A stretch of 64,000 bases of DNA from assembly GCF_031769215.1 (NCBI RefSeq), contig NW_026782464.1, positions 124,001 through 188,000 on the forward strand, written 5' to 3'. Below, piece after piece: positions 12,035-47,024 of the stretch. How positions within the stretch are numbered: position 1 is the stretch's first letter; each line of letters opens with the position of its first letter. The position numbers were made by a program, and so were the translations under genes. Origin of the DNA: Ylistrum balloti (lineage: Eukaryota). The notes beneath the pieces are model-generated. The model was given only the letters and a program-made list of their open reading frames with translations, was not told the DNA's origin and did no database searches.

Positions 12035-12176
12035 TGTACAGAGTCTGTAATAAAAATGTGAGTTAAGTAGACCTTTCCATACCGAAGTAGCGATTAGCTT
12101 CTGGCTATGATCGTCTCTTTATCCATAATGACAAAAGGAAAATACATACCGATTATTAAAGTGTAACTTACTATAT

Positions 12177-12330
12177 NNNNNNNNNNNNNNNNNNNNNNNN
12201 NNNNNNNNNNNNNNNNNNNNNNNNNNNNNNNNNNNNNNNNNNNNNNNNNNNNNNNNNNNNNNNNNNNNNNNNNNNNNNNNNNNNNNNNNNNNNNNNNNNN
12301 NNNNNNNNNNNNNNNNNNNNNNNNNNNNNN
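12177..12330. other. Assembly gap (154 N)
   Basis: Run of N in the sequence. Confidence 1.
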
Positions 12331-13649: not shown

Positions 13650-14225
13650 TTCTTAGTTTTATCATTATTATTATTTCTTCCACTTTCTTCCATCGGCGAG
13701 GTTTCCGACGCGTTTCTCAAAAACTATTGCATGGAATTTAACAAAACTTTACACATATATTCATACATGCGAGGCGGAGTGCAGGCCACTTGAATTTTTC
13801 CAATCCATCACTTGAGCGTATTAGGTGACACTAGGAGCAAAATGGAGTAGTCCATTTTTCATTCGGCCATCGATCGGTCATCTGAGCGGTCAGCTGTGGT
13901 CAAAATTTGGCCAAATTTTATATATTGTCCGATTTTCGTGAAAATTGGTATCCATGTATTATGTGGCACTATAGGAACAAAATGGTGTAGTCCATTTTTT
14001 ATTCGGCCGTCGATCGGTCATCTGAACGTTCAGCTGTGGTCAAAATTTGCCCAAATTTTAGATATTTTCCGATTTTCGTGAAAATTGGTATCTATGTATT
14101 ATGTGGCACTAGGAGCAAAATGGAGTAGTCCATTTTTCATTCGGCCATCAATTGGTTATCTGATCGATCAGCTGTGGTCAAAATTTGCCAAATTTTAGAT
14201 ATTGTCTGATTTTCGTGAAAACTCT
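13650..14225. mobile_element. Non-autonomous element with internal tandem repeats of about 139 bp (3 copies); Helentron/HINE-like
   Basis: Units start at 13830, 13968 and 14108 (ACTAGGAGCAAAATGGAGTAGTCC...). A TTATTATT tract and a unique 5' segment precede them. The element is absent from the paralogous block near 18.7 kb. The class is inferred from architecture only. Confidence 0.5.
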
Positions 14226-14246
14226 TTAGTGGTGCTAAGAACATAT

Positions 14247-14490
14247 GGTGGTCGGGTGGCGCAGTGGTAACGCACTCGCCTTTCACCTAGTCGACCGGGG
14301 TTCAATTTCCGGAACGGACGTGAAAAGGTAAGGGGGTCACCTGCCCGACCACGTGGGTTTTCCCCGGGTACTCCGGTTTCCTCCCACAATAAGACCCCTC
14401 GCACACTTACATCCGGGCCAACAAGAGTGATTAGTATAAGTTGACATAACTTGTTTCGCAATTGTTGTAAAATAAATAAAGTTTATATTT
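14247..14490 (+). mobile_element. tRNA-derived SINE with V-domain core (V-SINE-like)
   Basis: Pol III A box TGGCGCAGTGG and B box GGTTCAATTTCC, the core GGGTTTTCCCCGGGTACTCCGGTTTCCTCCCACA typical of V-SINEs, and an A/T-rich tail. Confidence 0.75.
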
Positions 14491-14960
14491 ATATTTATAA
14501 GCCTAAGAGGCGGTTGAATAAAAATCTAAAGTGATCGAAAGAAATGTCTGTATCTAGATGTGGAGGTGCGCTAGCCATATAATTCAATAAACATATTTTT
14601 ATGTATCTGATGACAAGGGCATCTGTTTTGTTAAACTTGAACTTGCTGATAATTGCATAATAATGATAATAATAATAATCTATATTTAGAACGCTTTTCA
14701 GAATTTTTTTTTTCAGTTTTCTGTTGATAATCATATTTATTGCTATACATATATAGAAGTTAAATCTGTATTTTCCTTATCTTCGTAAAAAAAGAATTTG
14801 TTTTTGTTCCAGATAACCTTTCACTTTTTCAAATTTGAGTGAATATCAATAACTTCTCGCTTATACCCCCTGAATGATATACTAGATGGCGCTCTAGTTG
14901 TTACGGTCCTGGTGTTTTGCTCACGTGAAGAGTAGATATACTATATCTAGACCTGTCGAT

Positions 14961-15175
14961 ATGCCGAAAACGTGTTGTTGTGTTCCCCACTGCCATAAGG
15001 GAGGGGGCCATTCATTCCCAAGTGAAGATAAGCTGAAAGGTTATGGGTATCTGTCATCAGACGAAATTCTTTGGTGAGAAAATATGAGCGATGGACTCCC
15101 TCAAAAACAAGTGTCGTCTGCAGTGCCCATTTTCTCAAGACTAACTACAAAACTGAGACAACTTACGATAATAAT
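14961..15175 (+). pseudogene. Frameshifted THAP zinc-finger domain, probably a DNA transposon remnant (P/Harbinger/Kolobok type)
   Basis: The reading MPKTCCCVPHCHKGGGHSFPSEDKLK, then a 1-nt frameshift, then RLWVSVIRR...WTPSKTSVVCSAHF gives the full THAP C2CH signature with the FP, W and AVCSxHF-like motifs. It is not in the ORF track. Confidence 0.8.
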
Positions 15176-16197
15176 GCAATGTTGTTGGATTACTTCTGTT
15201 TGTTGTTTCTTTCTCATTAGGTTTGTAATGAATAATTACTCGTTTTGATTTTCTGTATTACAAAATTCTAATGACTATATGTATTTTGGAAACAACAGGG
15301 ATGGGACCGGGATGTTGGGAGGGGGAGGGGTCATGTACAGCAGGATTCCTTTCACGTTGCAAGAGTTGCACACTCAAATATGAAAAGAAACACGTTAAAA
15401 CAGAAGATTATTTTAGCATCTGTAGCTTCTAAAAAATCACCGATCGCTTTGTGTATGTTAAAGATAAACAGTCTCCGATTAGTCACAACTTAAATATGTA
15501 CATTCACAGGGGCTCGGTTTCGGGGCTTGTTATAATACTGAATAACTCATAAAGATGCTTCTGATCAATCTTATCACCTTAAGGGTAACCAGTTAACATT
15601 TTTAACTTGTAAATTACTGGTAATTTTCATAGAATGTCAGTTAACAACATCAACAACATTAAAATACTCAATATATATATCCACCTGAACATTAACAGCA
15701 TCTAAAATGTCATTGTGTGTATTCAGTATTTTAATGTTATTGTTATAACTGATATTATTATGAAAAAATAAGTGTGTTGCCACTAATAAAAAGTAGGGTA
15801 GGTAGGTCGGAAGTATTTATTTTTTCTTTACTTCCCCCCCCCCCCTATTTTAAGTCAATACTAGAACATACCTTATATACCTAATAAGAGGGCTCATTCC
15901 TTCATCATGCATCCCTAATTGTTCAATTACACTAATAACATAGACACATTGTCTACATTGATAAATATTGCAAATTGTCTCATCACACCAATATGTGTGA
16001 ATAAGATACCCATTAACATTACAAAAACTAATTTAAAATGGTAACTGTGGCGGGAAGCATTCTGGTATATCAAGAATTGACAAATCTGAACAAAATATCG
16101 TACATATTTTATCTAGATAATCATTAAATGAATAAAATACAACATCGTTACTCTTCAATGAAAATAAAATACATGTAAAAGAAAAAAGAAATTGTGT

Positions 16198-17763
16198 TTA
16201 GGTATTGTATTTTCCGAAGGTTGCATAATATTCCAAAAAAGATGTGAATCTAAAGAAGACAGACACGGGGAGTAAAATTTCATACACAACATTTAGTAAG
16301 TCTTTGGAAAAATCATTATGTTCCAGTATCCGATTGACTGGAAACTCAGTTTTAAGAAAGCTGTCGTTGAACCAGAACATAAAGTTGCTTATCATTGTAA
16401 ATATCAGAACTGATTCAAGCAAATCGATGTTTGACCGAGGGTCACATTTCTTACATCGGTTAGCATGCAAAAGAAAGACAACCTGGAGATAGTCCTGGAA
16501 TATGCTGATGATGCTTGTGGACATGAGCATTTTTGCTGAAATATCTGAAGATACGTCACCGCCTATACATTCGCAGATATGCATCATAAATAATCCAAAC
16601 GCCGACAGTAAATAGACGTGCTCCCATGTCTTCAGACCTTGCGAAGATTTGTCAGGACTACAGTACTGAACTAAACAAAAGAAACCAATGAAGATTGCGA
16701 GAACAATCATAGCCTTTAACACTAATTCATACACTTCAGAGACATATCTCATACTGTTTACGTCTCCTATATCCATCGCCATGGCAACATAACAAACAAC
16801 TTGCCCAAGTCCCAATGCAATACTTATAATCAGGGTAATTAACTGACATGCCGTTCGTCTGCCTTCATTTCTCGAGTGTTCCGTCGTTGTTTCAGATGAC
16901 AGAAGTGACGATCTCTCTGAATCATTTATGTCGCTTATTTCTATGTACGGCACTTCACCATTAGGATGTTGTACTTTTGTGGGAGACCAAATTTCCAGAA
17001 GAATCGTACAGGACAGCAAAACAAACTCTGTAAAATTTGGTCGCAGAATCGAGCTTGATTTTTCAAGAAGAACGATCATGGTGTTGTTGTTTTTTAAACA
17101 GCGTGCTATATCATTGTCAGGGTCGATATCTATAATTGTAGATAGAGTATTGCCCATAATGTTGACGTACACAAAAATGGAAACATTTCCTGCTAGCAGC
17201 ATAGACATTGTACAATTAACTAGATCAGTTGGTTCCAGTTCGTATAGTGAAAAGTACGTTATGAAAATCATCTGTGTGAAAAGACATATGATCAATAAAG
17301 TGTTGAAGAAGAGCACTATGTTCCAGAAATATCCTCCAGATATGTATATGGAACATTCAATTTGCTTGGCCAGGAGGAAACCACAATAAAAAACTGTTGC
17401 TAAGCCAAACATCCAGAGGAATATTACCTGTAATTTGGGAGTGCTTGTGTTTCGTTTTGCTGCAACAATGGACTGCAGGCCATGTTTATTAACCAGGTAT
17501 CCAAGGACAAAGATACACGTCATAGCGGTAATCATGAGTAATGTGAGGAGAAGAAGAACAAATCCCAAACGAATTTGTGTGTGTGAAGGTATCCGTTTGC
17601 TGGCGGTGAACACTATCACTATAGCAAAGACGACCAAGAACAAAACACGTGAAGAGATAATACAGTCATAATACCGGGATCCATTCCGTCGTGTTCGGCA
17701 ATTTCCGGCCATGAAGGGCAGGACCACTACGGACGTCAGCAGCTTCCCACACCAGGAGTCCAT
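16198..17763 (-). CDS. OTOP: Otopetrin-family proton channel, paralog A copy 2 (521 aa, single coding exon)
   Basis: 12 aa differences from copy 1. The true start is probably the ATG at 17763. The 22-aa extension in the ORF track runs through the splice acceptor ttttattccag. Confidence 0.85.
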   Translation of the reverse strand: MDSWCGKLLTSVVVLPFMAGNCRTRRNGSRYYDCIISSRVLFLVVFAIVIVFTASKRIPSHTQIRLGFVLLLLTLLMITAMTCIFVLGYLVNKHGLQSIVAAKRNTSTPKLQVIFLWMFGLATVFYCGFLLAKQIECSIYISGGYFWNIVLFFNTLLIICLFTQMIFITYFSLYELEPTDLVNCTMSMLLAGNVSIFVYVNIMGNTLSTIIDIDPDNDIARCLKNNNTMIVLLEKSSSILRPNFTEFVLLSCTILLEIWSPTKVQHPNGEVPYIEISDINDSERSSLLSSETTTEHSRNEGRRTACQLITLIISIALGLGQVVCYVAMAMDIGDVNSMRYVSEVYELVLKAMIVLAIFIGFFCLVQYCSPDKSSQGLKTWEHVYLLSAFGLFMMHICECIGGDVSSDISAKMLMSTSIISIFQDYLQVVFLLHANRCKKCDPRSNIDLLESVLIFTMISNFMFWFNDSFLKTEFPVNRILEHNDFSKDLLNVVYEILLPVSVFFRFTSFLEYYATFGKYNT

Positions 17764-17875
17764 TGTACAGAGTCTGGAATAAAAATGTGAGTTAAGTAGA
17801 CCTTTCCATACCGAAGTAGCGATTAGCATTTGGCTATGATCGCCTCTTTATCCTTAATAACAAAAGGAAAATACA

Positions 17876-17900
17876 TGTGTGTGTGTGTGTGTGTGTGTGT
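17876..17900. repeat. (TG)n microsatellite
   Basis: Read directly. It occupies the position where copy 1 has different sequence and the N gap. Confidence 0.9.
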
Positions 17901-20065
17901 ATTTATCTTGGTACCTGGTACTGTTTAAAATATACAAGTAGATGTGGTAACAATCTAATGAGATATCCTGATATGTCACTCAGTACGATTGTCCAGTTGT
18001 TGGTCCAAACGCTGTTTCTTATTGCAATAAAACAAACAGGATGGTGTATAATAGACTGGTATTAACTTTAAATAAGGACAAACAGACCAGGAAGTTTTTG
18101 TGTGGATTTCCATCTTATTTCCTTCCTCCCGCTGAACAATTATGTCATTACAGTGCATGTTTTAAGATATGCATTCAGACTAGAATGGTGATATATACGC
18201 ATATAAATTAAAATGATGAAGTCGTTATATAAACACTTACACGTGTACATCACTATCAGGCAGTCAGAAAATGTAATAATAACATGAACAGTAGTAAATG
18301 ATGCCAAGCTGCGTTAGAGATATGGATAGTATATTCATACATTTACGTTTCAGAATTTTAAAATGAATTTGATGAATAGGGAGGAATTCTCCGTTTAAAA
18401 CCTATTGTGATACTGACTTAATCTTTCCTATGTTTGATATTTATGGCAGTCGAGGGCTGGCATTCTGCAACACAAATGTGATTCGATCTAAGATATGAAG
18501 AATTTCAAACTGAGTCGCATATAAATATCCGTCAGTTGTGTGTACATGTAATGCACTTTTTGTCGAACAAGTTTGTGTCAAACATTTCCAAATTCTTCGA
18601 TTCGACTGAATGCTCTTGTTTTCTGGCTCTGTCAGCAATTCTGTTGGGTATGACATAACTTTGTCAATGACCTCAATTGTCCCCAGATAATACCTTTTCA
18701 TTTTTGTTTCAGTTTTGTAATAATAATAATCTATATTTAGAAAACTTTTCAGAATCACACAGATTTGTTATTACAATTGAATTCCCAGCTGATAAATGGG
18801 TGATGTATAAAACAGTAGCAGATCTTAAAGAATTGTCATATTGTGCTCTGTACTTTGAAGCAACACCTTTTTAATCAGTAAATTTTAATTTTTTATTCAG
18901 AATTTGTAATTGGTTAAGTTAAAATTTTACTATTTTGAATTTGTGTGAACAACAACATAAACTGTTAGATATAGGATGACCTTGTACTTCGTACTTATTT
19001 TTTCAGATTTCTGTTGATAATCATATATCTATTGCTATAAATATATAGTAGTTAAACCTTAACTTATCTTAGTAAAAAAAGAATTTTGCTCTCAGAATTG
19101 ATCTTCGTTCTAGACAACCTTTCACTTTTTTCAAATTTGAGTGATTTATTTTGTACTCAAGTTTACATATTGGTTAAATGTGTACTGTTTTCTAATTTGA
19201 GTAAATCAACATAAAATTGTTGTCATACATATATATTACATTGTAGTTGTATATCTAAATTTTTGTGTATTCTCTATACTCACTGTCATACATTACTTAA
19301 ACATTTTATTGTTGGCATAAAAATCATTGTGTCTGAGAATTGTTTTCCCTATAGATATCTATATCTAATGATTCTTTCCTATTACTTACATTTAGCTCGG
19401 TTTTAAATGTGTATTAAATTATATGTAGGAATAGCAACTTTCATAGATTTTATTATTGATTTGGTATCATGTCTACAAAATGAGTGGACATTCTTTGTTG
19501 AAACAAACGATTTACTATATAAACACATTCCTTGCTTCTTTTGCAGAGTTTAAGCCACAATCCAACAATTGGTTACTTTATACTGACAAATGACCAACAT
19601 TGATGAATACGGTATATATTGTGATGTCGACAAAAAATAACAAGACTTAGCTGTGGAGTGTACGTTTGGGATTGGTGTGTTGTTTATATTCTCTCCATCA
19701 TCATACAGCCCTGAGTAATGGGACAAAAGTTTTATACAAAGCGGTAGTAAAACCAGGAAACCACAAAAAATCGTTTCTAGGTCTCTTTAACATGTGTCAC
19801 ATTTTATCCATTTTGTTCACAACTTCAACAACTGTAATGCGATAGCCATGAAAAAAAATCCGGATAGTAAATCATGCTTTCACAATCACGACAGGAAATT
19901 ATCTCTTCAATCTATCTAACAAAGACATACATGTAGCAATGTACATATTACCGCTTATTAAGGAAGAAGGGAAATTAATGTAAAAACATCCCTGTATGAA
20001 CTTTAAGCATACTATTCGTTTTGGTTCAGATATATGTGTGTAAAAGGAAAGGAAATATTAAAGAA

Positions 20066-20726
20066 TACACGAGTACACGGTAGAACGGGTATTCATTCTA
20101 GCCTCCGACCAGGAAGGGTACCTGGATACACGAGTGTGGTAGAACGGGTATTCATTCTAGCAGCGGGCTATCTAGGGTACCTAGATACACGAGTGCGGTA
20201 GAACGGGTATTCATTCTAGTCGCCGACCAGGAAGGGTACCTGGATACACGAGTGTGACAGAACGTTCATTCATTCTAGCTGCGGACCAGGAAGGGTACCT
20301 GGATACACGAGTGTGGTAGAACGGGTATTCATTCTAGCAGCGGGCTATCTAGGGTACCTGGATACACGACTGTGGTAAAACGGGTATTCATTCTAGCAGC
20401 GGGATATCTAGGGTACCAGGATACTCGTGTGTGGTAGAGCGGGTATTCATTCTCTCCGCGGGCAATATAGGGTACCAGGATACACGAGTGTGATAGAACG
20501 GGTATTCATTCTAGCAGCGGATTAGCTAAGGTACTGGGATACACGAGTGTGATAGACCGGGTGTTCATTCTAGCCGCGCACCAGGTAGGGTACTGTAACA
20601 CACAAGTGTGATAGAACGGGTATTCATTCTAGCCGCGGACAAGGTAGGGTACCAGGATACTCGAGTGTGAAACAACGGTATTCATTCTAGCCGCGGACAA
20701 TCTAAGGTACTATAACACACGAGTGT
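20066..20726. repeat. Minisatellite, about 59-bp unit (TACACGAGTGTGGTAGAACGGGTATTCATTCTAGCCGCGGACCAGGAAGGGTACCTGGA), about 11-12 copies
   Basis: Unit starts at 20127, 20186, 20245, 20304 and onward. A solitary related unit lies at about 21275-21330. Confidence 0.9.
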
Positions 20727-27718: not shown

Positions 27719-28084
27719 ACTTTGCCTACTTGTTAGAATTTATATTAAAAATATATTTACATCATTATCTGAAATTGTTAATTTTGCATATTGAACGTCG
27801 GCTTTTGATTATCATCGGAATAGCTCTGTTATTGTGGTAGAAACAGGTCATAAAAACTCGTGATCTTACTATATGATACTTTCTATCGCTCTCGTTGGTT
27901 ATTTCTTAAAAGTAAAGAAAAAAGGGAAATTTTTTACATTCGAAAAACTAACTTGAATAAAAGAAATACCAGAACAACGTGTTGTGCGATTTCTACGTTA
28001 TCTGCTTGTGTTGATTCTTTCGCACATTATACTAAATCATAACTTCACAGTTAGAAAGTAGGGCTGAAAATTTGTTGATAATAA

Positions 28085-30600
28085 TTACAGAGATACAATT
28101 GCTGGAGAGTCGGCTTCCCTCTTCCTTAGAGATACAATTGCTGGAGACTCAGCTTCTCTCTTCCTCACAGATACAATTGCTGGAGACTCGGCTTCCCTCT
28201 TTTTCAGAGATACAATTGCTGGAGACTCGGCTTCCCTCTTCCTCACAGATACAATTGCTGGAGACTCGGCTTCCCTTTTCCTCACAGATACAATTGCTGG
28301 AGACTCGGCTTCCCTCTTCCTCACAGATACAATTGCTGGAGAGTCGACTTCCCTCTTCCTAAGAGATACAATTGCCGGAGACTCCGCTTCCCTCTTCTTC
28401 AGAGACACAATTGCTGGAGACTCGGCTTCCCTCTTTTTCAGAGATACAATTGCTGGAGAGTCGGCTTCCCTCTTCCTTAGAGATACAATTGCTGGAGACT
28501 CGGCTTCCCTCTTCCTCACAGATACAATTGCTGGAGACTCGGCTTCCCTCTTCTTCAGAGACACAATTGCCGGAGACTCCGCTTCCCTCTTCTTCAGAGA
28601 CACAATTGCTGGAGAGTCGGCTTCCCTCTTCCTCACAGATACAATTGCCGGAGAGTCGGCTTCCCTCTTCCTTACAGATACAATTGCCGGAGAGTCGGCT
28701 TCCCTCTTCCTTAGAGATACAATTGCTGGAGAGTCGGCTTCCCTCTTTCTCACAGATACAATTGCTGGAGAGTCGGCTTCCCTCTTCTTCACAGATACAA
28801 TTGCTGGAGAGTCGGCTTCCCTCTTCCTCACAGATACAATTGCTGGAGAGTCGGCTTCCCTCTTCTTCACAGATACAATTGCTGGAGAGTCGGCTTCCCT
28901 CTTCTTCACCGATACAATTGCTGGAGACTCCGCTTCCCTCTTCTTCAGAGACACAATTGCTGGAGACTCGGCTTCCCTCTTCTTCAGAGACACAATTGCT
29001 GGAGACTCGGCTTCCCTCTTCTTCAGAGATACAATTGCTTCTCTTTTCTTCAGAGACACAATTGCTGGAGACTCGGCTTCCCTCTTCTTCAGAGATACAA
29101 TTGCTGGAGAGTCGGCTTCCCTCTTCTTCACCGATACAATTGCTGGAGACCCGGCTTCCCTCTTCTTCAGAGACACAATTGCTGGAGACTCGGCTTCCCT
29201 TTTCTTCAGAGACACAATTGCTGGAGACTCGGCTTCCCTCTTCTTCAGAGATACAATTGCTGGAGAGTCGGCTTCCCTCTTCTTCACAGATACAATTGCT
29301 GGAGAGTCGGCTTCCCTCTTCCTCACAGATACAATTGCTGGAGAGTCGGCTTCCCTCTTCTTCAGAGATACAATTGCTGGAGAGTCGGCTTCCCTCTTCC
29401 TCACCGATACAATTGCCGGAGACTCCGCTTCCCTCTTCCTCACCGATACAATTGCCGGAGACTCCGCTTCCCTCTTCTTCAGAGACACAATTGCTGGAGA
29501 GTCGGCTTCCCTCTTCTTCAGAGACACAATTGCCGGAGACTCCGCTTCCCTCTTCTTCAGAGACACAATTGCTGGAGACTCGGCTTCCCTTTTCTTCAGA
29601 GACACAATTGCCGGAGAGTCGGCTTCCCTCTTCCTCAAAGACACAATTGCCGGAGACTCCGCTTCCCTCTTCTTCAGAGACACAATTGCCGGAGACTCCG
29701 CTTCCCTCTTCTTCAGAGACACAATTGCTGGAGAGTCTGCTTCCCTCTTCCTCAAAGATACAATTGCCGGAGAGTCGGCTTCCCTCTTCCTTAGAGATAC
29801 AATTGCCGGAGACTCCGCTTCCCTCTTCTTCAGAGACACAATTGCTGGAGAGTCGGCTTCCCTCTTCTTCAGAGACACAATTGCCGGAGACTCCGCTTCC
29901 CTCTTCTTCAGAGACACAATTGCTGGAGAGTCGGCTTCCCTCTTCCTCAAAGACACAATTGCCGGAGACTCCGCTTCCCTCTTCTTCAGAGACACAATTG
30001 CTGGAGAGTCGGCTTCCCTCTTCCTCAAAGACACAATTGCCGGAGACTCCGCTTCCCTTTTCTTCAGAGACACAATTGCCGGAGAGTCGGCTTCCCTCTT
30101 CTTCAGAGATACAATTGCCGGAGACTCCGCTTCCCTCTTCTTCAGAGACACAATTGCTGGAGACTCGGCTTCCCTTTTCTTCAGAGATACAATTGCCGGA
30201 GAGTCGGCTTCCCTCTTCCTCAAAGACACAATTGCCGGAGACTCCGCTTCCCTCTTCTTCAGAGATACAATTGCTGGAGACTCGGCTTCCCTCTTCCTCA
30301 AAGATACAATTGCTGGAGACTCGGCTTCCCTTTTCTTCAGAGACACAATTGCTGGAGACTCGGCCTCTCGCTTCTTCAGAGATGCACCCTGAGGGGCTGT
30401 TAACGCTATTGAAAATAAATCACAGACTGTAATTTCATTGCAATTAAAATATGTTTCAAACTTGATCAGACAATAATTAAATTGAATGATTGAATTATTT
30501 GGCTCTATCAGACTGACATTATGTTAAATAAGAATGTAAGAGTAAGCTTACCTAGATTAATCAAACACAGCATGACCACTATTGAAATCCACTGTCTCAT
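28085..30600 (-). CDS. 789-aa secreted multi-copy peptide precursor: signal peptide + 58 EA(E/D)SPAIVS(L/V)-type decapeptides + one EAIVSL, separated by KKR/RKR
   Basis: Coding exon 30600-30552 (MRQWISIVVMLCLINL+G, donor GTAAGC) splices in phase 1 to the acceptor ttttcaatag at 30406. This gives MRQWISIVVMLCLINLALTAPQGASLKKREAESPAIVSL..., and exon 30405-28085 completes 2370 nt. The stop TAA falls exactly where the next KKR would start. Unit variants are silent or conservative (K/R, D/E, L/V) in this frame. Confidence 0.9.
28088..30380. repeat. Coding tandem repeat, 39-bp unit (+ strand consensus AGAGATACAATTGCTGGAGACTCGGCTTCCCTCTTCTTC), about 59 units
   Basis: Read directly. One unit carries an in-frame 12-bp deletion near 29040. 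Confidence 0.97.
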
Positions 30601-31919
30601 ATTTGATGTTTCTGAAACAATACAAAACCTAATGATATATCACGTGTTGGAATTATGATTATACTACATCATCAGTGCACAATCAAACAATAATATGAAT
30701 TTATACAACCTGACAATGCGTTAGATAACAGACTGGTAATGCCCAACGTGACCCCGTTTTCTGCTTGTCCAACCCAACCCCACGTGGTCTCATACATAAT
30801 ACTTAATACCGTCTCGTTTTACACCATATTTAAGTGTATGATTCACTACAGTTTTGACGTTTTCTAATCATAAGAGATATTCGGCTATGAAAACAAATCC
30901 TATTTACATGTGAAAAACACTCGTTTACTGTTACACAACATCATGAAGTAAATAGAATTCACGACGATGATTTGTTAAGATGATAGCTACTATATCTTAT
31001 AAAGTGCATGTTGTCATTGCTATCATGTTGCTGATGTACTATTTTACAGTTGTTACATGAGTTTTTCTTTTCGCCTGGTCTAATGACATATGTCTGTAGC
31101 TATGAGATTTAGTCGATCTTGTATTCTTTCCTATAGAATTAAAGCTATTTGAAAGGTTAAATGAATGCCTCATATTCGAGGAAACATTCATCTATGCCCA
31201 CGAAATAATAATAATATGCATTATCCATATAGAGCTCTATACTGCTAAAATGTCACCTATAAAAAAAACTCTTTACGAGCCATGTTTAAAAAAAACTTAT
31301 TTCTACTATAAAATATACAAAAGTCATCACGTATACATCTATGGTAATACAAAGAAGTATCGAATAAATTTCGGAAGAGTCAAATACTAGCACAAACTAA
31401 TTAAAACACAGTTAAAACACTGTCTAGATCACATGCACTTTTGAAGAGATGCGTTTTCAGAGTGAGAACTTGGCAGCTGATAGCAGGGATCTTACCACTG
31501 TGATACCGTTATGTTATTTATTCTAGACTCATAAAATGTAGAGATTAAAATGTCAATGTTTCTTTCAAAAAAGAATTATTATTATTATAAAGTATTATTT
31601 ATGCTTATAGAATTTAAAATGGCAGTTTAACACAAGGGGAAATAATCCAGTGTATTTCGACTTGTCTTAGTCGCCTCTTGGGCTTCAATGTTTAGGTCCT
31701 TAATAATAATGAAGAGAGGAATAAGGCCGAAACTTTTGTAATGTGGAGTTTGATTCACTATTTGGCTCTATGTAACCTTTCCTTTTCTTATGTATGTTCC
31801 ATCATAGCCGCCTGTGTGGGTATACATTCATTTGTATACATGGAACACAGTTTCACTTAAAATTCAATAGATTAAGAAAACCTAATAAAACCATGTTTAG
31901 AATAATAAATTATGTAGCA

Positions 31920-32150
31920 ATATTTGGTGAGATTTTGAAGCTATTTGGTTCATTTGCAACTATATTTATTTCTACTGGGCACTATGGGTTACGTTCCCTT
32001 AGCGCTAGTCGAGGCGTGGGCACGTGAGCACACAGGTAAGAATGGGGTCAGTCATGGATGAGTGATTTTATAGACTTGGACTTGGAGACCCGTGTAGCCT
32101 TGGTTATATAGGTATCTATTGTAGCCTTCATATATGTTACACATCTGCTA
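31920..32150 (-). repeat. Dispersed repeat, copy 2, inside intron 1 of the peptide-precursor gene
   Basis: Reverse-complement match to about 21460-21650. Confidence 0.7.
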
Positions 32151-33366
32151 GTCCTTAATAGTACGGTGCATATCGGGCTCATTTTGAATTTAAATCCCTG
32201 ATAGCATAAATTCAGGCCAACAATATCTGTTCAATAAAACACATCACATTTTATTATGTGAGTGCATATAGTCAGTTATTTCAAAGGACGCGCCAGTAAA
32301 ACCCCTGTAGTTTATCTGTACAGGTGTGAACTATAGTCATCTCTTTAGTGGGCTAATTTCTCGTCGTCCGATTCTATGTCCTTTATGATTTCATACACTA
32401 CTACAGTCAATATACGAAGAAATCATCTGACACCCCTGACTTTAGTTAAAACAAATAAAACTGCGAGAAGATCTAGAATTTGAAAATACATTTGAACAGA
32501 ACAATTGAATATTATTGAAGCAATTAAAATTTGAAAATTAACAACTGAAAATTCTTGATCAAGGATTCGGATCGGAAGGGATCTACAACATCTACTGATA
32601 ACTATATCTTAAATTAACACAGTACATTAACGAAAAAAAGAAAAATGATTAGAAATCGATTAACCACAGTCACTTGTAAAATTACATTTTCTCTACTATG
32701 GCAATACTTATATACAATGCAAATACATAGTACATCTCTAATTAATTGAACTCGTACATTTTATTTTTCACTAAGATTTATGACTAACGTTTATAAATAG
32801 CAGTCAATAAGTTAATAGTTTTGTTTACAAAATGATAGAACAATGAGAGTAATACAGCAGAAATACAAATAAAATTTCCTTTCTGACTGTATGAGATTTT
32901 AGATGGTTCATTGAGAGACAATCTCTCTACATGTATAATAAATATGATGACGTGCGGCACTGTGGAAACAAAACACTTTAAATTATGAGTGTATCAAACT
33001 ATTCAGTCTGTATCTTATACACATATACGTGTTTGACCATAAATTTAGCTGTACTCTTATATATTTAGAAAATAGATAAACCTTATTCCACATTTATCTA
33101 TGTCATTTTAAAATGTATATCAGCTACGATAGAATCGCACAATTGTGCGATAGAACATGTGCGGTAGCTTATTTTGCCCTGTTTCCCTATCTTGTGGGAA
33201 ATTCTGAATAACTAGCTAGAACTACTAGTAGAGAAAATAAACAGGGTCGTTATTCAATACAAATGTTGATAAATGAAAGTTGAAAAAAAAACCCTTGTAT
33301 ATCTTAATCACTTAAAAAACAATTGTAATCAATTGTGAAAATTAAGAAAGCAATTTTTTTTCTTAC

Positions 33367-33475
33367 CTCTTCACGTGGATGCAGCTGATACAGTTGTTGC
33401 CTTAAAGAGGAGCTTTACAGTTGGTAAATAAGAGAGGATTTACTGATTAAACCCCGTTCGGAGTCAGCTTTTATA
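33367..33475 (-). promoter_or_regulatory. TATA box + Initiator core promoter and non-coding first exon of the peptide-precursor gene
   Basis: Minus-strand CCTATAAAAG has its first T at 33475. The Inr TCAGT has its A at 33444, giving the canonical -31 spacing. A 78-nt exon without an ATG ends at donor GAG|GTAAGA (33366). It would splice to the acceptor ttgtttcag at 30612, 11 nt before the ATG. Confidence 0.7.
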
Positions 33476-34139
33476 GGAGAATATCAAAAACATGTCGTCT
33501 GGAGTTGGGGACAACAATTATTCATATCATTTCGTAGAACTCGTAAAGTTTCACCGCACCCCCATTAATTCGGCTGCACAATAACAACAGTATAATTAAC
33601 GTCAGGGCTAAAGACTCCCTGTCAACTCATCGTACAAATGACAGATAACGACCTCTCCAAGAAACCGGATACTAAATTTTAGAAATGTGACACGGACACA
33701 AGGCACCGATTTCGCAATCTCGCTGAAATCGTTTCCAAGAACTCTGCTAAGAACTGTGTCAATACCTGGTACCTGGGCTTCGAAGGTCTAACATGACTTC
33801 TATCAAAAGTTTTAAGTTGTGCATACATCAAAGAAGCTCAATAAAATTCTTGTAATGGCGAATTTATTTCTTTTAGACACGGTTCTTTATTGGATCTAGT
33901 GTCTGACTGTGTACATGTTGCTGATTTATAGATTAACAAATTTCTGTACAAAGAAAATACGGTATTTTTACAACACACAAAGATCCATTATACTTCTATA
34001 TTTGCTAGCTAAATTTCAACTTAAATCTGTTTTTAAGAAAAAAAATTCACTTAAATACGAGTTACGTTATGTTATGAATGCACCATGAATTATGAAGTTC
34101 TAATCGATAATGGTTTTATGAATACACATTTAGAATTAG

Positions 34140-35280
34140 ATTTTGTCCACGTTGTGAGTATTGCAATAACTTTTCCATACAAAGTGCGATTTTGTCAACA
34201 TTGTGAGTATTTGAATACCTTTACTATACAACGTGCGATTTTGTCAACATTGTGAGTATTTGAATATCTTTACCATGGAAAGTGCGATTTTGTCCACGTT
34301 GTGAGTATTTGAACACCTTTACTCTACAAAGTGCGATTTTGTCCACGTTGTGAGTATTGGGATTCCTTTACTATACAAAGTGCGATTTTGTCCACGTTGT
34401 GAGTATTTGAATACCTTTACTATACAATGTGCGATTTTGTCCATGTTGTGAGTTTTTGAATATCTTTACCATAGAAACTGCGATTTTGTCCACGTTGTGA
34501 GTATTTGAATACCTTTACTCTACAAAGTGCGATTTTGTCCATGTTGTGAGTTTTTGAATATCTTTACCATAGAAACTGCGATTTTGTCCACGTTGTGAGT
34601 ATTTGAATACCTTTACTATACAATGTGCGATTTTGTCCATGTTGTGAGTATTTGGATTCCTTTACTATACAAAGTGCGATTTTGTCCACGTTGTGAGTAT
34701 TTGAATACCTTTACTATACAATGTGCGATTTTGTCCACGTTGTGATTATTTGAATACCTTTACTATACAATGTGCGATTTTGTCCATGTTGTGAGTTTTT
34801 GAATATCTTTACCATAGAAACTGCGATTTTGTCCACGTTGTGAGTATTTGAATACCTTTACTATACAATGTGCGATTTTGTCCATGTTGTGAGTTTTTGA
34901 ATATCTTTACCATAGAAACTGCGATTTTGTCCACGTTGTGAGTATTTGAATACCTTTACTATGCAATGTGCGATTTTGTCCATGTTGTGAGTATTTGAAT
35001 ACCTTTACTATACAATGTGCGATTTAATCCATGTTGTGAGTTTTTGAATATCTTTACCATAGAAACTGCGATTTTGTCCACGTTGTGAGTATTTGAATAC
35101 CTTTACTCTACAAAGTGCGATTTTGTCCACGTTGTGAGTATTGGGATTCCTTTACTATACAAAGTGCGATTTTGTCCACGTTGTGAGTATTTGAATACCT
35201 TTGCTATACAATGTGCGATTTTGTCCATGTTGTGAGTATTTGAATACCTTTACCATGCAAAGTGCGATTTTGTCTATGTA
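34140..35280. repeat. Minisatellite, 49-bp unit (TGCGATTTTGTCCACGTTGTGAGTATTTGAATACCTTTACTATACAAAG), about 23 copies, with partial dimeric higher-order structure
   Basis: Period 49 read directly. Variants ...TTTTGAATATCTTTACCATAGAAAC and ...ATTTGAATACCTTTACTATACAATG alternate over part of the array. Confidence 0.95.
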
Positions 35281-37791: not shown

Positions 37792-40700
37792 ATGCTCACC
37801 AGTGTTGTTGTGTTCGTGGTGTCTGTGTGTGCTGGTTTAGTAATAGGTCTAACTACAACACGTACAGATGACCAGCATAACATTAAACATGAAGTTTATT
37901 ACAAGCATATGAAATTACCACTGAGTACTTTTGTCGGAGAAAAGGTAAGGTCACCGACGGATATCGATATAGACCTTAATCCGTGGTTCACCATCACCGT
38001 TCTGTTTCCTTATTATTTATCCTTTGACTAAATATTGCAACTTATTTAATCTTATTTAATATAGAGAAATTTAGACACGAGTATTGAAGAAATGCATGAT
38101 ATTGGTTCTGAATCTTCTGAATTTTTTTTTACAGAAAATTGAATATGGCTGTTCGGCTTTCCCGCTCAAAGCAGACGAATATATAAGTAAGTAATACTAG
38201 TATTCAATACGTTACTGTGACACATCCTTAATAGTTCACATATCTATATTGTTGTTGATTTTCTTGACCTCACGTTCGATGATCAATCACATAATTGATA
38301 TAGATATAGGGAGTTATTATGGTACATCGTCTACATCACCTGATTGGAATATTGCTACAAATCCTCCTTATGTACAAATAAGCCTTATACACAAGTCTCG
38401 TGAGAAAATATATCGTTCGTTTCGCTTTATTTCATTTCATGTTATTTCATGTGGCAACTTTATATAAAGCTTGCTTGCTTGGCTTAGTGGTAGAACTCGG
38501 CTTATTATGCCGGAGTTCTATGTCCGATTTCTGTCGGGGGACCCAGCAGAAGTGTGTATTTTCCCCTGTTTTTTTTTCCATTTTGTACAATAAAACAAAT
38601 CAAACAACTGTGACCAATGATTATATACACTTTTCTTTTTTTACCGATGTTGTTCTTTACGTTTCTGTCTTCCTCACCTATCTCTTGGTATGGTTATTTA
38701 CAGCTGAATATTTGCCAATCGGAAAACGTAACGATTTGTACCACATCACCGTGAGTGTGTGTGACACTCCCTACGATAAGTCGCCTATTTGGTAAGATGG
38801 AAAAAGTTACAATCATAGAAATAAAGATAAAATCACCAACACTGATATAATATATCCATGTTAAGGATGGTAGTGGTAGTATGCACATGTATGGCTAAAA
38901 TCAGATTCCTGTTTAACGAAAAGAAAATTAATTATACAATATTTATAGATATTAATGAGAATCGACGTAATAACGTTATTTATAACGTATTACAATGTTG
39001 TTTTATTTTATTCCTTGCTCGCGTTTTATATCTAAATGAAGGAAAGTCAGTGCTTTGATATTGCCTGTTTTACACTGTCAAATTTATGTTTTATCAGACC
39101 AGACACTTCTTTTTACATATATGTATTTACGCATTTGTTTGAAGTAGGACAGAACATGATATTAAATTCATCAATTGAAAAAACATTCTGAATAAAAGGT
39201 AAGACAAAGCTATGATTATATAGATAATTATAGACAGACAATTACAACAAACTAATTTTCAATGAATGTACCACACCCTTACTGTAGATAATTATGACAA
39301 TAAGATAAATAGAAGAAAATGAATTTAATGCATAACTGGTATATGTATTTTAGGGAATGCATCAACCCGAGTCATGTTTGTAAAAATTCGAAAAGAGAAT
39401 TCCTGTATTCCTGGACGAATGGTGCCCCGGGATGGACTTTACCTGAAGGTTAGTCTCTAATCAACTGAAAATCATATTGTAATCAGTCATTCGGTTTAGC
39501 CTCCACAGAAATCTTGAAGTCCTTGTCAACAGACTCTTAATTCTTACTCAAATTCGATTAAACTAGGGGATATGAAAGAGGATATGAATAAAAACAGATT
39601 TCCATGAAGGCTCTTGGAAACTAACAAAGGGATTCGGTAGGTAAGCGTCTGCTTCTGCATCGACGACACCCATCATGTAAATCCTAGTCACCCCAAGTAA
39701 GGGATCAATGCCATATTCCCAACTGAGAACAAGAGAACCATAGGGGCGTACCACTGTATATCAAACATTTTCAGCTCCATTTCTCAATAGCATTGTCTCC
39801 ACCCCAGTATGGTATATCTTCATCAGAAAACAATTGTTATTTGACTCTTTAATCTTTCATCTATTTATTTACATACATACTGAAGTCACATTGTATGTGT
39901 CCTCACAGGTACGGGCATATATACTGGTAATAGATCCAAATACGTAATAATGCAAGTCCACGGAAGAGACGACATCTCAGGTAGGTGCAGTCTTCGATCG
40001 TTTGATACAGCTTACTATGTGAGAGAGAGACAAGGAGATTTGTTATTCCTGCATCACTGTCAATAAAAAGTTAACGAACTTTAATCCTGATTGGAAATCT
40101 TACATATTTTTTAGGTGATTATCAAACTTGTATACGTCTCCGGATACACAGTAAAACAGTAACAGAGTATAGACCAAGCAATCTGTTATTCATATCATTA
40201 ACAGTTCAATATTCAATGAAAAAAAATTTGTTTGCAAATGAGCCATTGGTTTTGTTATTCGCAAGATGAATTATAATGACATATCAGTTTTCATATATTT
40301 CCTTCTACTGACGTATGTAGTGCATGTTTTTCCCCTGATATCAATTTACTAATATACGTTCATATCTGTTATGTTTGAGTTCCAAGTCTATATATCATTT
40401 TTATTCTCCCTGTCAGATGAACGTGTCAAAGACTTTGCACACATGCGTTTGAAAATCCAAACCACCAGGTATATATAAGAATCACTGTAATGCAAAAATC
40501 AACAGGTCAAAACAACTTTGAGAGGAATTCATAATAATTTCAATAGCCTAGATAAACTGTAAGTCTTTACGATATTTATCAAGTGTGAAAGATTACCTTT
40601 ATTGTTATTATTAATTATAATATTTATTAGGAACATTGACAAATGTATTGTCTTTTATATACCAGACCTCAAGTAGCAGCTGCTGTTAGCATGTACACCG

Positions 40701-43700
40701 GATACGGTTATATTCCTCCCCATGTAGATAGTAAGTATATGTAGGTAATGTTTGTATACCTATATTGGTGTCTTTTGTTATATATATCATCTCATGACGT
40801 TATAATCATTATGTCATTTTCTAATTATTTACTAAGGAGAATGCTTCGATTTTTTAAGTCAGTCAAAAGACGTCTTTGCTGTAGTCGATATATTATTTGA
40901 AAGAGTATAAATGTATTTAAAAAACTACACGTAGTTATATTTAGAATGAGAAATTAGGATGAGTTACTATTCTTGAGACTATAATGTTTTACTTGTAGAT
41001 TTCACAGTTGATACAGCATGTGTATGGAACAAGACGACACCTGTGCCCATCCTAGCTTACGGAATACATACACACACCAGGGGTCAGTACACAAATGCTG
41101 AGTGACCTTGTCATAATTGTCAAGCATGCATACATGATTTCATTACTTATATTAATACAGAAGATGATATCATTCTCAGACCACTTCAGTAAAGTTAATT
41201 CTGAATTGAGATCACCTGACATTTTGTCACATATCCATAACCCATCATATCTTTCTTTTGAACTTGTCATTGTATCTTTATTTCATTTTCTTTCTTCTCA
41301 TTTTTTAAAAAAAAATCTTGTTTTGTTTTTGTTTCTCGCATATCTTTTGATTTCATGAAAATTATTCTTGGCTATGGTTATAAATGTACTAGTGAGGTTC
41401 TACAAACATATTCAAATCGAAAAAAGGGCTCATTTTGATTTTATTGGATACAATGTAAACGACATCTATAATTGTGATCTCTTTTTTATTAGGTTTGGCG
41501 CTATCTGGTTACATTGTCCGAGATGGTCAGTGGATCGAGATTGGACGCGGTGACCCATTATATCCATTGGTGAGTAAAGTCACCTTTTCTCTTTCATAAC
41601 ACCAACTACAACTGTCAAAATAAATCATGCATGGTAGAATATTTAGGTTGATGAAAACCTATGATAAAAATCTCATCTGTAAACAACCTTCTTTCCAAAG
41701 ACTTAACCGATATTTAACATGGGTTAGTAAGATAACTCTTATACAATATGAATATTAAGTATCAAATTAAACACAGCAGGATTTCTTAGGTAATATCGTT
41801 TGAAATAGTAGGCACTTTCTAAGCATTGTTTTTCATTAGGAGATGGAAATCGTACTCAATGTCGTTTTCATTACAAAACGTACAAATCCTCTGGAGATAT
41901 CTCTTATTCATTAGTTGCATTAATTGATATATTCGTTTTGTTCCACTGTAAAGTAAACGACGAAAGGTCATGGAGTACGAGATACCTTCACTTCAGATTT
42001 TTGTGTTAGTCTTTATACTTGTTTATTCACGAATGTTTCTAAATAATATTTTAATTTTATGATACAATTGTGGTAACGCACAACGCAAAAGATAATACGC
42101 GCACATCGGGCTTATATCACGTGCATACCGTCCTCACATCGTCCGCACACATCCGCAATACAGTATCTAGCGCACAGCTGTGCGATAGGATCGCACATTT
42201 CGACTTGGTAAAATGTCTATTATACTGTATTGAAATTAAATGGAAAACTCACCAATTTATAACTAAATAGCGAACAAAAGCGTTTTCAAATTGATCAGTG
42301 ATTATCAAGGTCTTTTTTTAATTCGACAGTTATTCTATCGTATTGTTTCATTCCTCAGAGAATGGTGAGTGGTGTGCTGCGGATATATACGTGAAAGGTC
42401 CTGTTCCGTACCGGCTAGGTCTTCCATGTAGTGTACATGTTTTGTTTACAAAACGATATTTTTAATACAGATGCTTTCCTGACGGTATAAGATTTCAGAT
42501 GATCCGTTACAACTTGACACTGCTGATAGACCTTAGGTCTGCCTTCAAGCCACTCTTTCATTCATTCGAATGGTGGCACGGTTTACGAATTGCAAGGCAC
42601 TTATCAATTATGTGTCGTTTGTACAGTCTTCTTGTTCTTATTGGTATTGACAGCTAATTATTTATGAATATAATTAACCCGTTTTGTCGCTATTCCAGAC
42701 AATGTTTGACATCACAGATCGAAAGATGCGGATTCTGCCTGGAGATATTATCGTAAGTATTGGATGTTTATATTCAAAGCTGAAAAAATTATTGAATAAC
42801 CTAGTCTCATTTTTATCGTTTTAAAACTTATTAAATATCATTATTGCATTTGTTTCTTTTTATTTATTTTTCTCATTGATCTGTTTTATTAATTTACATG
42901 TTCGTTCGTTTATTTATTTATTCATTGATTCATCTAATAACTGTTTTATATGAGAAGCACATCTTTTGAGAGGACATGCATCAACTCAATTGTTCTTATT
43001 TTGATGAGTCGACAGCGACCACAATTACCGCGAATTACTTGACAGCAAATTAAATGTCTGAACATCATGGATATGCATTTGATATGTATGTTGTATAATG
43101 TTTATCAGTTATAGGTATTGTGCATTTCAGGCAACCAGATGCACATACCGGAATACTGACAACACACGAGTCTCCATGGGGTAAGCATACCATTAGGAAG
43201 AGTAAAATTAGAGTGAAAGATTGAAAATCGACGAACCGTAAAATGTTTACATGACACCGCTTAAATTTTACCTTATTCATGTTAATGTTCATGATGGTAT
43301 ATCAATAAGGCTGTAAATCAGAATTTGTACATTCATTGAGGACAACTATCTATAGAGAAATATCGTAAAGTTATGTATATGCCTGTTTTGAGCACATACT
43401 TTTCCTATTTGGTAAATGGTCGTTTCACGTGATATAAGACTGCTATAAATATATAGAATTAGTGTTGTTGCTTCCTTGATGATCAAGGTATATTCGTAGA
43501 TTACTTTTCGTAGTTTTGTGGTTGTAAACCTGATTTACATGGCAATGTCTTCGATAAAACAAAAGGCGCTTTCCCTTGTGAAACATCAAACCTTACTCTT
43601 ATTTTACCGTTCCAATTCCTCCGTTTAAATCTTCTCTTTGTCCATATCTTGTCCTCTCTTTTGTCTATTTGATTTTTTCAACACGTCGGTTGCTTTTGTA

Positions 43701-44176
43701 ATTTTGTATATAACTGTTGTATATTGGTGACGGACCAGTATGTGTTTTAGCTATATACTAATATCAGTTTATACATGACTACTATCATTTTGTAGAGGAC
43801 AAGTGTAAATATGTAGATGGGAAGAAAAGAATGTAGAGGACTAGCGTACATTTCTAATGGACTACAGAGAACCTTTCCAAGGGGCAAGTTTAGATACAGA
43901 AATGTCTTTGAAAATCCCCTGAAATATTACCATTATTTGTCTTTCGCTGTTCTTTAAAGGTTCACCCACGTCAGAGAGATGTGTAATTATTTCGTTTACT
44001 ACGGAGTAACTCCTGACAAAATTGCTTCGACCAAAGCCATCGCATGTGGCGGAAATGCACAGGGGACAGGCTGGGACCAACTGTTTGACAACATTCCAGC
44101 AGACGCTAGTGATCCTACTGGAGACACGGAACAATCCCGTTATGTCAAAAAGTATCATCTTACCAAAAATTACTGA
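37792..44176 (+). CDS. Phm: Monofunctional peptidylglycine alpha-hydroxylating monooxygenase (PHM)-like copper enzyme, 352 aa, 12 exons, signal peptide, no PAL domain
   Basis: Exons: 37792-37944, 38135-38186, 38704-38791, 39354-39448, 39909-39980, 40417-40468, 40666-40730, 40999-41082, 41493-41569, 42699-42752, 43131-43180, 43960-44176. All introns are GT-AG, phases are consistent, and the total is 1059 nt. Motifs are colinear with PAM/PHM: EYGC, LYHITVSVC, FLYSWTNGAPGWTLPEG, SKYVIMQVHG, AYGIHTH, SGYIVRDGQWIEIGR, PGDIIATRC, REMCNY and W..LFDNIP. Confidence 0.9.
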
Positions 44177-45446: not shown

Positions 45447-47024
45447 TTAATGTTCCTGCGAGTTAAACTTCCGAAATATTGCATAACATTCCAAAAACGT
45501 TGTAAATCTAAAGAACACAGAAAATGGTAAAAAAATTGAATATACTAAATTCAAAAGATATTGCGGAAAGTTACTGTGGTGCAATAGCTGTGTACGGGAA
45601 AATTCAGATATAAAGAAACTGTCCGTAAACCAGAAAATAAAGTTGTTTATCATTGTGAATATCAGAACTGATTCAAGTAAGTTTATGTTTGATCGGGGGT
45701 CAGTTTTCCTAAATCGGTTCGCATGTAACAGAAACACCACTTGAAGGTAGTCTTGGAATACGCTGAAGGCATTGGTGAACAGGATGATTTTGGTATTTTG
45801 ATCGTCGGTGACGTCAGCACCAATAGCGATGCTGATATGTGCTAAGAATAAACCAAACGCCGACAGCAAATACAAATATTCCCGAGACTTCAGGCCTTTC
45901 GGTGAACTATCAGGAGTACAGTAATGAGCCAAACAATAGAAACCAGCAAACGTTGCAAGCGCCATCATCACTTTCAATGTTAACTCATATACTTGCGCAA
46001 TATACAGTATGACGTTTCCATCCCCTATATCTAGAACGAGGACAATGTAACACACAACAAGTCCTAGCCCTGTTGTTATGCTCATTGCCAGTGAAAGTAT
46101 TTGTACTAATGTCCGCCTGCCTCTATTTGCCGGATGTTCGATGACATTGAATCCATGCAGAAGGGACGTCTGCTCCGATTCCTGTACGTCGTTTATTCCT
46201 ATATACGTTGGTGATTCATCTTGAGGATTCGCTTCTTGTTTCGGTGACCAAATCTCAAGAAGTATTGTACTGAACAGAAAAACATACTCAACGAAAGCTG
46301 GTCTTAGAAAGGGTAATGACTTTTCTAGAAGCAATGTCATTGTACTGTTGTTTCCTAAACAGGATATCAAGTCAATGTCATCTTCGACTTCTATCAAAAA
46401 TGATCTGGTGTTTTTCATTTGATAGACATACAAGATCACTGATAGATTACAAGTTAAAATCAAAAACATAGCGTAATTCACTAGTGAGCTCTGTTTCAGC
46501 TCGAACGGAGAAAAATAAGAGACGAAAACCATTTCTGAGAATAAAGCTAGGATCAATGTGATATTGAAAACTAATAAAATATTCCAATAAATTCCACCAG
46601 CGAAATTCACGGAACATTCAATCAGTTTTCCTATGAATAACGCACAAGATAATCCCGAGGACAGGCCGAAGATCCACATGAAAACCACCTGAAGTTTTCT
46701 GGTATTCCTGTCATTTCTAGCAGCGACAACTGATTGAAGGCCATATTTCCGTACTTTGTTTCCAATGATACAGAAGATGGATAATGCAGATATCATAATC
46801 ACTAATAGAAGACTAAGAACAAATCCCAATCGAAATTCCGCGTGTTTGGGTATACTTTTAGTGACAGTGAATCCAAAGACAAGTGAAACAAATATCATGA
46901 CAAGAACACGGGACGAGATTACACAGTCATAATACCAAGATCCATGCTGTCGCCTGCGGTATTGTGGACCAGCAAACGGTAGAATGATGGTTGATGTCAA
47001 CAGCTTGCCACACACCGATTCCAT
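45447..47024 (-). CDS. OTOP: Otopetrin-family proton channel, paralog B copy 1 (525 aa, single coding exon)
   Basis: Colinear with paralog A. Motifs FSEMVFV, LTCNLS, PAFVEYVFL, FQDYLQVVFL, INNFIFWFTDSF and PFSVFFRF. The acceptor ttttttgtag lies upstream of the ATG. Confidence 0.85.
   Translation of the reverse strand: MESVCGKLLTSTIILPFAGPQYRRRQHGSWYYDCVISSRVLVMIFVSLVFGFTVTKSIPKHAEFRLGFVLSLLLVIMISALSIFCIIGNKVRKYGLQSVVAARNDRNTRKLQVVFMWIFGLSSGLSCALFIGKLIECSVNFAGGIYWNILLVFNITLILALFSEMVFVSYFSPFELKQSSLVNYAMFLILTCNLSVILYVYQMKNTRSFLIEVEDDIDLISCLGNNSTMTLLLEKSLPFLRPAFVEYVFLFSTILLEIWSPKQEANPQDESPTYIGINDVQESEQTSLLHGFNVIEHPANRGRRTLVQILSLAMSITTGLGLVVCYIVLVLDIGDGNVILYIAQVYELTLKVMMALATFAGFYCLAHYCTPDSSPKGLKSREYLYLLSAFGLFLAHISIAIGADVTDDQNTKIILFTNAFSVFQDYLQVVFLLHANRFRKTDPRSNINLLESVLIFTMINNFIFWFTDSFFISEFSRTQLLHHSNFPQYLLNLVYSIFLPFSVFFRFTTFLECYAIFRKFNSQEH

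Follow-up and report, generated by a model that had tools for sequence, protein, structure and literature searches.

A 39-bp tandem repeat in the scallop Ylistrum balloti as the likely coding body of a secreted multi-copy peptide precursor

Is the 39-base-pair (bp) tandem array that lies near the middle of a 64,000-nucleotide (nt) stretch of the Ylistrum balloti genome a satellite, or is it the body of a protein-coding gene? The array (28088-30383; TRF scores it at 59.2 copies, 90% matches and 1% indels) differs from the rest of the window in base composition, 50% GC against approximately 33%. An initial annotation of this DNA had read the "satellite" as a hidden gene for a secreted precursor of about 59 peptides. 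The analysis described here confirmed that gene model to the base and uncovered coding constraint in support of it. Most likely, the locus is an intact, unannotated, three-exon protein-coding gene. We put at roughly 70% the probability that this gene specifies a secreted polyprotein processed by convertases into multi-copy peptides. All coordinates refer to the 64,000-nt window, that is, the whole stretch analysed; "128 kb", where scans are concerned, is the sum of its two strands.

Purifying selection on the translated array

Conceptual translation of the array on the minus strand yields 59 peptide cores: EAESPAIVSL (25 copies), EADSPAIVSL (16), EADSPAIVSV (8), EAESPAIVSV (7), and the singletons EAGSPAIVSV, EVDSPAIVSV and EAIVSL. 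The cores are separated by 59 basic spacers, KKR in 36 cases and RKR in 23. Lysine at the second and arginine at the third spacer position are invariant in 58 of the 58 full units; the first position alone varies, and this only between K and R. Glu-Ala directly follows Lys-Arg in 58 of the 59 units. A short N-terminal piece, APQGASL, is likewise bordered by KKR. The product thus consists of repeated cores flanked by di- or tribasic sites, 59 of each (K/R-K-R). The cores are anionic and non-amidated, all of them ending in Ser-Leu or Ser-Val with no amidation glycine ahead of the basic site.

A stop-free unit whose period is divisible by three remains open trivially. Since the long open frame could have arisen in this way, the pattern of variation between units was examined. 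Variable columns cluster at third codon positions, where 10 out of 13 vary, against 5 out of 26 at the first and second positions combined (39 columns; Fisher p = 0.001). When the count is restricted to variants found in at least two units, the figures are 9/13 and 2/26 (p = 1.4e-4). Synonymous changes account for 14 of the 19 distinct between-unit variants, as compared to the 26% expected from random single changes in the consensus (binomial p = 1.6e-5), and the excess persists with transitions and transversions rated separately (p = 9e-5). As many as 37 distinct DNA units encode 10 distinct peptide units. The ratio of nonsynonymous to synonymous substitutions (dN/dS, Nei-Gojobori) among units is 0.20 in the proposed frame and ranges from 1.5 to 3.4 in four of the five other frames. 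The replacements found in more than one unit are limited to K/R at the first spacer position, E/D and L/V, and the 12 nt lost in the sole length variant leave the reading frame intact. Two arrays of 51-bp units elsewhere in the window, which served as control, show no bias of this kind, their variable columns being distributed 7/7/8 by codon phase. Variation indifferent to codon phase, the hallmark of a satellite, is therefore not what the 39-bp array displays. We conclude that purifying selection acts on the translated product of the array; it bears on cores and cleavage sites, as expected for the class of multi-copy precursors.

A probable three-exon gene on the minus strand

The exon containing the array (exon 3 in Table 1) comprises 772 codons without a stop. 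From its upstream stop up to the array it has no in-frame ATG, and initiation therefore requires an upstream exon and a splice. Both strands were scanned for a start exon combining an ATG, a basic N-terminus, a hydrophobic core of at least 10 out of 11 residues, no acidic residue and a GTRAG donor. The sole match in 128 kb is an exon beginning MRQW, 147 bp upstream from exon 3, which fits exon 3 in both strand and phase. Under looser criteria, this exon is still the only phase-1 candidate. Its acceptor ends in TTTCAG/A (the slash marking the splice junction), and its ATG at 30600, with an A at -3, is the first ATG and opens a stretch of 16 leader codons (MRQWISIVVMLCLINL). Exon 3 begins at 30405, preceded by TTTTCAATAG, with acceptor CAATAG/C. 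Joining 30611-30552 to 30405-28085 in silico through these canonical GT-AG sites produces a protein of 789 amino acids (aa) followed by a stop. The TAA, at 28087-28085, stands immediately 3′ of the last peptide and coincides exactly with the end of the array.

The spliced leader reads MRQWISIVVMLCLINL-A-LT and is followed by APQGASL. Its anatomy, with a basic N-terminus (M-R-Q), a hydrophobic core of about 15 residues and a c-region of small residues (ALT/AP), was judged heuristically and suggests that the N-terminus of the product is a signal peptide. By this rule-of-thumb assessment, the product has the signal peptide expected of multi-copy secreted precursors.

Upstream from the coding exons, a candidate promoter and a non-coding first exon were read from the sequence (Table 1). 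The pattern TATAAA-N23-27-TCAGT matches once in the window, with 0.71 matches expected by chance, and is not significant taken alone. The position of the promoter at 33442-33475 and that of exon 1 are plausible. The 5′ untranslated region (UTR) that includes the proposed exon 1 contains no ATG and has an in-frame TGA a few codons ahead of the start, which makes the ATG at 30600 the first usable one. An alternative start region is marked by a TATAAA about 100 bp upstream from this ATG (around 30705). Separately, a second in-frame acceptor, TTACAG (30406-30427, minus strand), is present 21 nt upstream from the main exon-3 acceptor. Its use would add seven residues to the leader (VCDLFSI) and leave the rest unchanged, possibly giving rise to an alternative splice form.

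Wherever the gene structure claimed by the initial annotation could be put to an in silico test, it was borne out. Splicing reproduced the phase-1 junction between signal exon and repeat and the 789-aa product, the census agrees exactly with the list of peptides and KKR/RKR spacers, and the stop is at the C-terminus of the last peptide. The TATA box and initiator are indeed present, though not significant on their own, and the leader exon stands, with a small correction of its wording to the sequence given above.

Table 1. Features of the window, by strand and position; a slash in a sequence marks a splice junction.
Feature	Position	Strand	Details
Candidate core promoter	33442..33475	-	TATAAAA from 33475; 31 bp downstream, TCAGT initiator (its A at 33444)
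Predicted non-coding exon 1 (5′ UTR)	33367..33444	-	donor AG/GTAAGA; no ATG; in-frame TGA towards the end; read from sequence
Exon 2	30552..30611	-	acceptor TTGTTTCAG/A; ATG 30600; donor AG/GTAAGC, phase 1
Intron 2	30406..30551	-	146 bp, GT...AG
Exon 3, coding part	28085..30405	-	A-LT, APQGASL, 59 units of (K/R)KR + peptide, TAA
Coding repeat units (59)	28088..30376	-	58 of 39 nt and one of 27 nt
Polyadenylation signal AATAAA	27713..27718	-	369 nt past the stop
Copper monooxygenase (PHM-like) gene	37792-44176	+	352-aa product, PF01082 + PF03712
Otopetrin gene, intronless	10469-12034	-	PF03189
Otopetrin gene, intronless	16198-17829	-	PF03189
Otopetrin gene, intronless	45447-47024	-	PF03189
Otopetrin gene, intronless	54916-56493	-	PF03189

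Searches for relatives and comparison with known precursors

The full exon-3 product and an N-terminal piece of 139 aa, used as queries against a clustered collection of 5.8 billion proteins (a length-restricted search), returned no match, not even to themselves. An exhaustive search of 1.84 billion representatives gave 181 matches to unrelated proteins that share only the 13-residue periodicity, none of them repeating the SPAIVS core. A back-translated scan of JGI metagenomes produced 536 pattern matches, of which 0 were confirmed; the Pfam family MF_alpha did not match; and the peptide strings found nothing relevant in 8.4 million papers and preprints. A feature search of an atlas retrieved weak analogies only (best score 0.75), with MF_alpha precursor clusters and an apidaecin cluster among the look-alikes. 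For three other scallops (Pecten maximus, Mizuhopecten yessoensis and Argopecten irradians), the 10-kilobase (kb) flanks of otopetrin orthologues picked from a tree were searched by tblastn; the precursor and the monooxygenase were both missing from these flanks, which thus did not capture the orthologous interval. Two Pfam families, T4_y05I_C and PKHD_C, score against the whole protein (28088-30403, minus strand) with E-values of 1e-17 and 3e-16, no single stretch being significant. Both were rejected because the values are artefacts of summing over repeats. Scores of this type could mislead an automatic annotator into calling domains.

The gene is thus unannotated, has no detectable relatives and carries an unusually high number of peptide copies. 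These results agree with the initial annotation in placing the peptide outside the mollusc neuropeptide families (no relatives, no motif match, no counterpart in the scallop neuropeptidome), in noting the lack of an amidation glycine and in calling the peptide new, no homologue having emerged from the protein collections. They also accord with the architecture it proposed, since a predicted signal peptide and repeats flanked by basic sites are both present. Probably, the Ylistrum gene belongs to the known class of convertase-processed multi-copy precursors, while the peptide itself is without known relatives.

Among molluscan precursors (FMRFamide, FCAP, FxRIamide, myomodulin), one finds the same combination of a signal peptide and tandem short peptides bounded by basic sites for convertases, the isoforms differing in conservative substitutions. 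The Ylistrum product departs from them in having no sequence similarity, no amidation glycine and spacers reduced to a basic triplet. Neither the core motifs of the known families (FMRFamide, FCAP, MIP, myomodulin, buccalin, pedal peptide and others) nor homology to them was found, and the C-terminal glycine of the amidated families is absent. The scallop examples of such precursors contain 13 to 24 copies, the highest values being 24 for FMRFamide and 21 for FCAP1 (PMC5996578); the 59 copies of the Ylistrum gene are about 2.5 times the top scallop value.

The junctions between units call to mind a different group. In fungal Kex2 repeat and alpha-factor precursors, KR is followed by EA or DA dipeptides that are removed by Ste13, and the secreted peptides are unmodified; alpha-pheromone precursors have 1 to 16 repeats (PMC6339444). 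Signal peptide, repeated cores and KR-EA junctions are all shared with the Ylistrum product, which has KR plus Glu-Ala in 58 of 59 units, in keeping with the X-Ala or X-Pro dipeptides of the fungal family. Unlike the fungal precursors, this is an animal gene with introns, set in a scallop otopetrin cluster and having 59 repeats; it shows no homology to fungal genes or to MF-alpha, and each of its units carries a single X-Ala dipeptide followed by E/D-Ser. We regard the resemblance to the fungal KEP/alpha-factor family as one of analogy, not of membership. The same dibasic plus dipeptide signature is borne by the bee apidaecin and melittin precursors. In honeybee apidaecin precursors, identical tandem peptides are joined by a dibasic site and Glu-Ala or Glu-Pro, the dipeptide being removed by a dipeptidyl aminopeptidase. 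The Ylistrum polyprotein has dibasic plus Glu-Ala joints like these; its peptides are anionic and aliphatic, unlike the cationic, proline-rich, antimicrobial apidaecins, and there is no homology.

Outside these groups, the cnidarian and placozoan Antho-RFamide and PRWamide preprohormones contain 14 to 21 copies, 19 to 21 being rated "very high" in cnidarians (PMC9545775). They resemble the Ylistrum precursor in their high copy number, in the acidic residues on the N-terminal side of the core and in the trimming by aminopeptidases or dipeptidyl aminopeptidases proposed for them (PMC9545775). However, they come from a different phylum and have no similarity to it, and their peptides are Gly-amidated, with no basic residues N-terminal to them. 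A further parallel is offered by the speract precursors of sea urchins, in which a single mRNA codes for numerous copies of a decapeptide without amidation, separated by a single Lys, that acts as a gamete signal released to sea water. Here too, the phylum is different and similarity is absent; the example shows that broadcast spawners do have non-neural polyproteins made up of decapeptides that are not amidated.

Processing, competing readings and genomic setting

We infer from the sequence that the gene is transcribed and its product secreted and cleaved by convertases. The leader would send the protein into the endoplasmic reticulum and be cut co-translationally around T19/A20, the -3/-1 rule favouring cleavage between ALT and AP. 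Subtilisin-like proprotein convertases (of the PC2, PC1/3 or furin type) would then cut after each K/R-K-R late in the secretory pathway, and an enzyme of the carboxypeptidase E/D type would strip the basic residues. One mRNA would in this way give rise to APQGASL and 59 acidic, non-amidated decapeptides, EA(E/D)SPAIVS(L/V). Glu-Ala being found right after Lys-Arg in nearly all units, dipeptidyl trimming is a real possibility: a dipeptidyl aminopeptidase of the DPP-IV/Ste13 type may shorten the peptides to (E/D)SPAIVS(L/V), and the Ser-Pro next to Glu-Ala would presumably stop further trimming. The N-terminal Glu could cyclise. For these predicted products, the calculated [M+H]+ values are 1015.531 (EAESPAIVSL), 1001.515 (EADSPAIVSL and EAESPAIVSV) and 987.499 (EADSPAIVSV), and for the trimmed forms 815.451 (ESPAIVSL), 801.435 (DSPAIVSL and ESPAIVSV) and 787.420 (DSPAIVSV); APQGASL has 643.341, and conversion to pyroGlu would subtract 18.011. 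A copy number this high suggests that the product is required in large amounts. The anionic, non-amidated character of the peptides speaks against an amidated neuropeptide of the typical kind and against a cationic antimicrobial peptide. The most natural reading is that of a released signal (a neuro/endocrine peptide or a water-borne pheromone) or of an exocrine peptide.

The gene could also be real and its product secreted, yet the protein, of roughly 85 kDa when intact, might remain uncleaved, as a repetitive polyampholyte with a structural, mucus, egg-coat or matrix role in which KKR and RKR provide charge. In the structural proteins that molluscs secrete, tandem repeats of the decapeptide type are common, numerous unrelated proteins with periodic repeats of 13 residues were found among the representatives, selection on the repeat fits this account equally well, and the peptide is unlike any known bioactive family. 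Still, the details of the junctions make it unlikely: Lys-Arg is kept at P2-P1 in all 59 of them, with variation confined to K/R at P3; Glu-Ala, the classic dipeptide trimmed after cleavage, follows almost every one; and the protein terminates exactly at a peptide C-terminus, APQGASL being KKR-bounded as well. A further alternative is a non-coding 39-bp satellite that is open simply because its unit lacks a stop and that lies next to a leader exon by coincidence. Its period is divisible by three, the array has two more frames that are open or almost open, many further tandem arrays occur in the window, no gene model is on record at the locus and the TATA-initiator match is not significant alone. 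We nevertheless consider a satellite very unlikely, given the synonymous excess and codon-phase bias, absent from the control arrays, the unique signal-like start exon in the right phase 147 bp upstream with consensus splice sites, the exact coincidence of the stop with the array end, and the 50% GC of the array within a region of otherwise 33% GC.

The last alternative concerns the strand. On the plus strand, the frame whose wobble positions coincide with those of the proposed one (unit DTIAGDSASLFFR) is stop-free from 28068 to 30392, or 774 codons, and thus has no stops across the array; its dN/dS is 0.26, the start of the array on that strand carries an AG dinucleotide, and a stop follows three codons past the array end. 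Codon usage, when compared with that of the otopetrin genes, failed to tell the sense frame from the antisense one. The low antisense dN/dS is, however, expected as a shadow of selection on the sense frame, because the wobble positions are shared. Silent variants number 10 out of 19 in the plus frame against 14 out of 19 in the minus frame; all those silent on the plus strand are silent on the minus strand too, which has four further silent variants of its own. Replacements in the plus frame are also less conservative (R/T in 17 units; mean BLOSUM62 score +0.48, against +1.66 for the minus frame). Finally, the plus frame lacks Met altogether, and even under loose criteria the 13 kb upstream on that strand contain no candidate start exon. 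That the plus frame should be the one under selection is thus extremely improbable. The shadow effect calls for caution in assigning the coding strand of tandem-repeat genes.

Several points weigh against a convertase-processed secreted precursor, which we continue to favour. Besides the open antisense frame, no protein is on record from the repeat locus even though its neighbours on the same contig, the otopetrins and the monooxygenase, are annotated (contig JAUZWB010000794.1, assembly GCA_031769215.1); the missing annotation may reflect the repeat masking suggested by the initial annotation or, instead, a lack of RNA-seq support in the tissues sampled. No fragment of the peptide repeat occurs among the 1.84 billion representatives, proteins from run assemblies included, no similar peptide is reported in the ganglion neuropeptidome of the scallop Patinopecten yessoensis (PMC5996578), and the searches found no orthologue. 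Cleavage of the signal peptide was judged by rule of thumb alone. Lastly, anionic peptides without an amidation glycine are atypical for neuropeptides and antimicrobial peptides alike.

The monooxygenase gene is arranged head-to-head with the precursor gene, 4.3 kb away. Its translated exons show the motifs AYGIHTH and EMCNYF. We take this paralogue to have Gly in place of Arg240 and Phe in place of Tyr318 (rat PHM numbering), which presumably are the residues that hold the carboxylate of the substrate glycine. Comparison of single exons with solved PHM structures gave no match, the queries being too short. As outlined in PMC7329392, fungal repeat-precursor clusters pair a Kex2-type precursor with oxidases, which makes a paired function conceivable here: the enzyme might oxidatively modify the Ser-Leu/Ser-Val ends or another position in the core. 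Adjacency being the sole evidence, we rate such a partnership as a long shot. If true, it would represent an animal counterpart of the ustiloxin-type fungal clusters for RiPPs (peptides made on the ribosome and modified after translation), built on the highest-copy metazoan peptide precursor described.

The region between the candidate promoter and the monooxygenase gene harbors a 49-bp satellite of 23 copies (34139-35274). A different 49-bp array, of 16.5 copies, is found at 8052-8861; in neither case is the period divisible by three. The four otopetrin genes form two recently duplicated pairs, with 98% and 99% identity within pairs and about 55% between them. The second pair is part of a tandem segmental duplication with a period of approximately 9,470 bp, which has also copied a 51-bp and a 67-bp array (48394/57864 and 52108/61578). 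Nearest relatives of these otopetrins are in Pecten, Mizuhopecten and Argopecten. In Mizuhopecten yessoensis, three otopetrins are found within 20 kb (967-20716 of the fetched piece of NEDP02005164.1), as part of a larger cluster on a 277-kb scaffold, indicating that the clustered expansion of otopetrins is common to scallops.

If expressed, the Ylistrum gene would define a molluscan peptide family without known relatives, its 59 copies comparing with maxima of 24 in the scallop neuropeptidome (PMC5996578) and 21 in the cnidarian and placozoan review (PMC9545775). It would also provide an example of a real gene missed on account of its satellite-like appearance. Surveys that mask tandem repeats, or that use ganglion transcriptomes alone, may systematically miss high-copy secreted peptides. 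The KR-EA junctions suggest that a bivalve, too, employs the Kex2/Ste13 style of processing known from fungi and insects. In a commercially fished broadcast spawner, a peptide secreted in bulk would be a candidate signal for spawning, settlement or defence.

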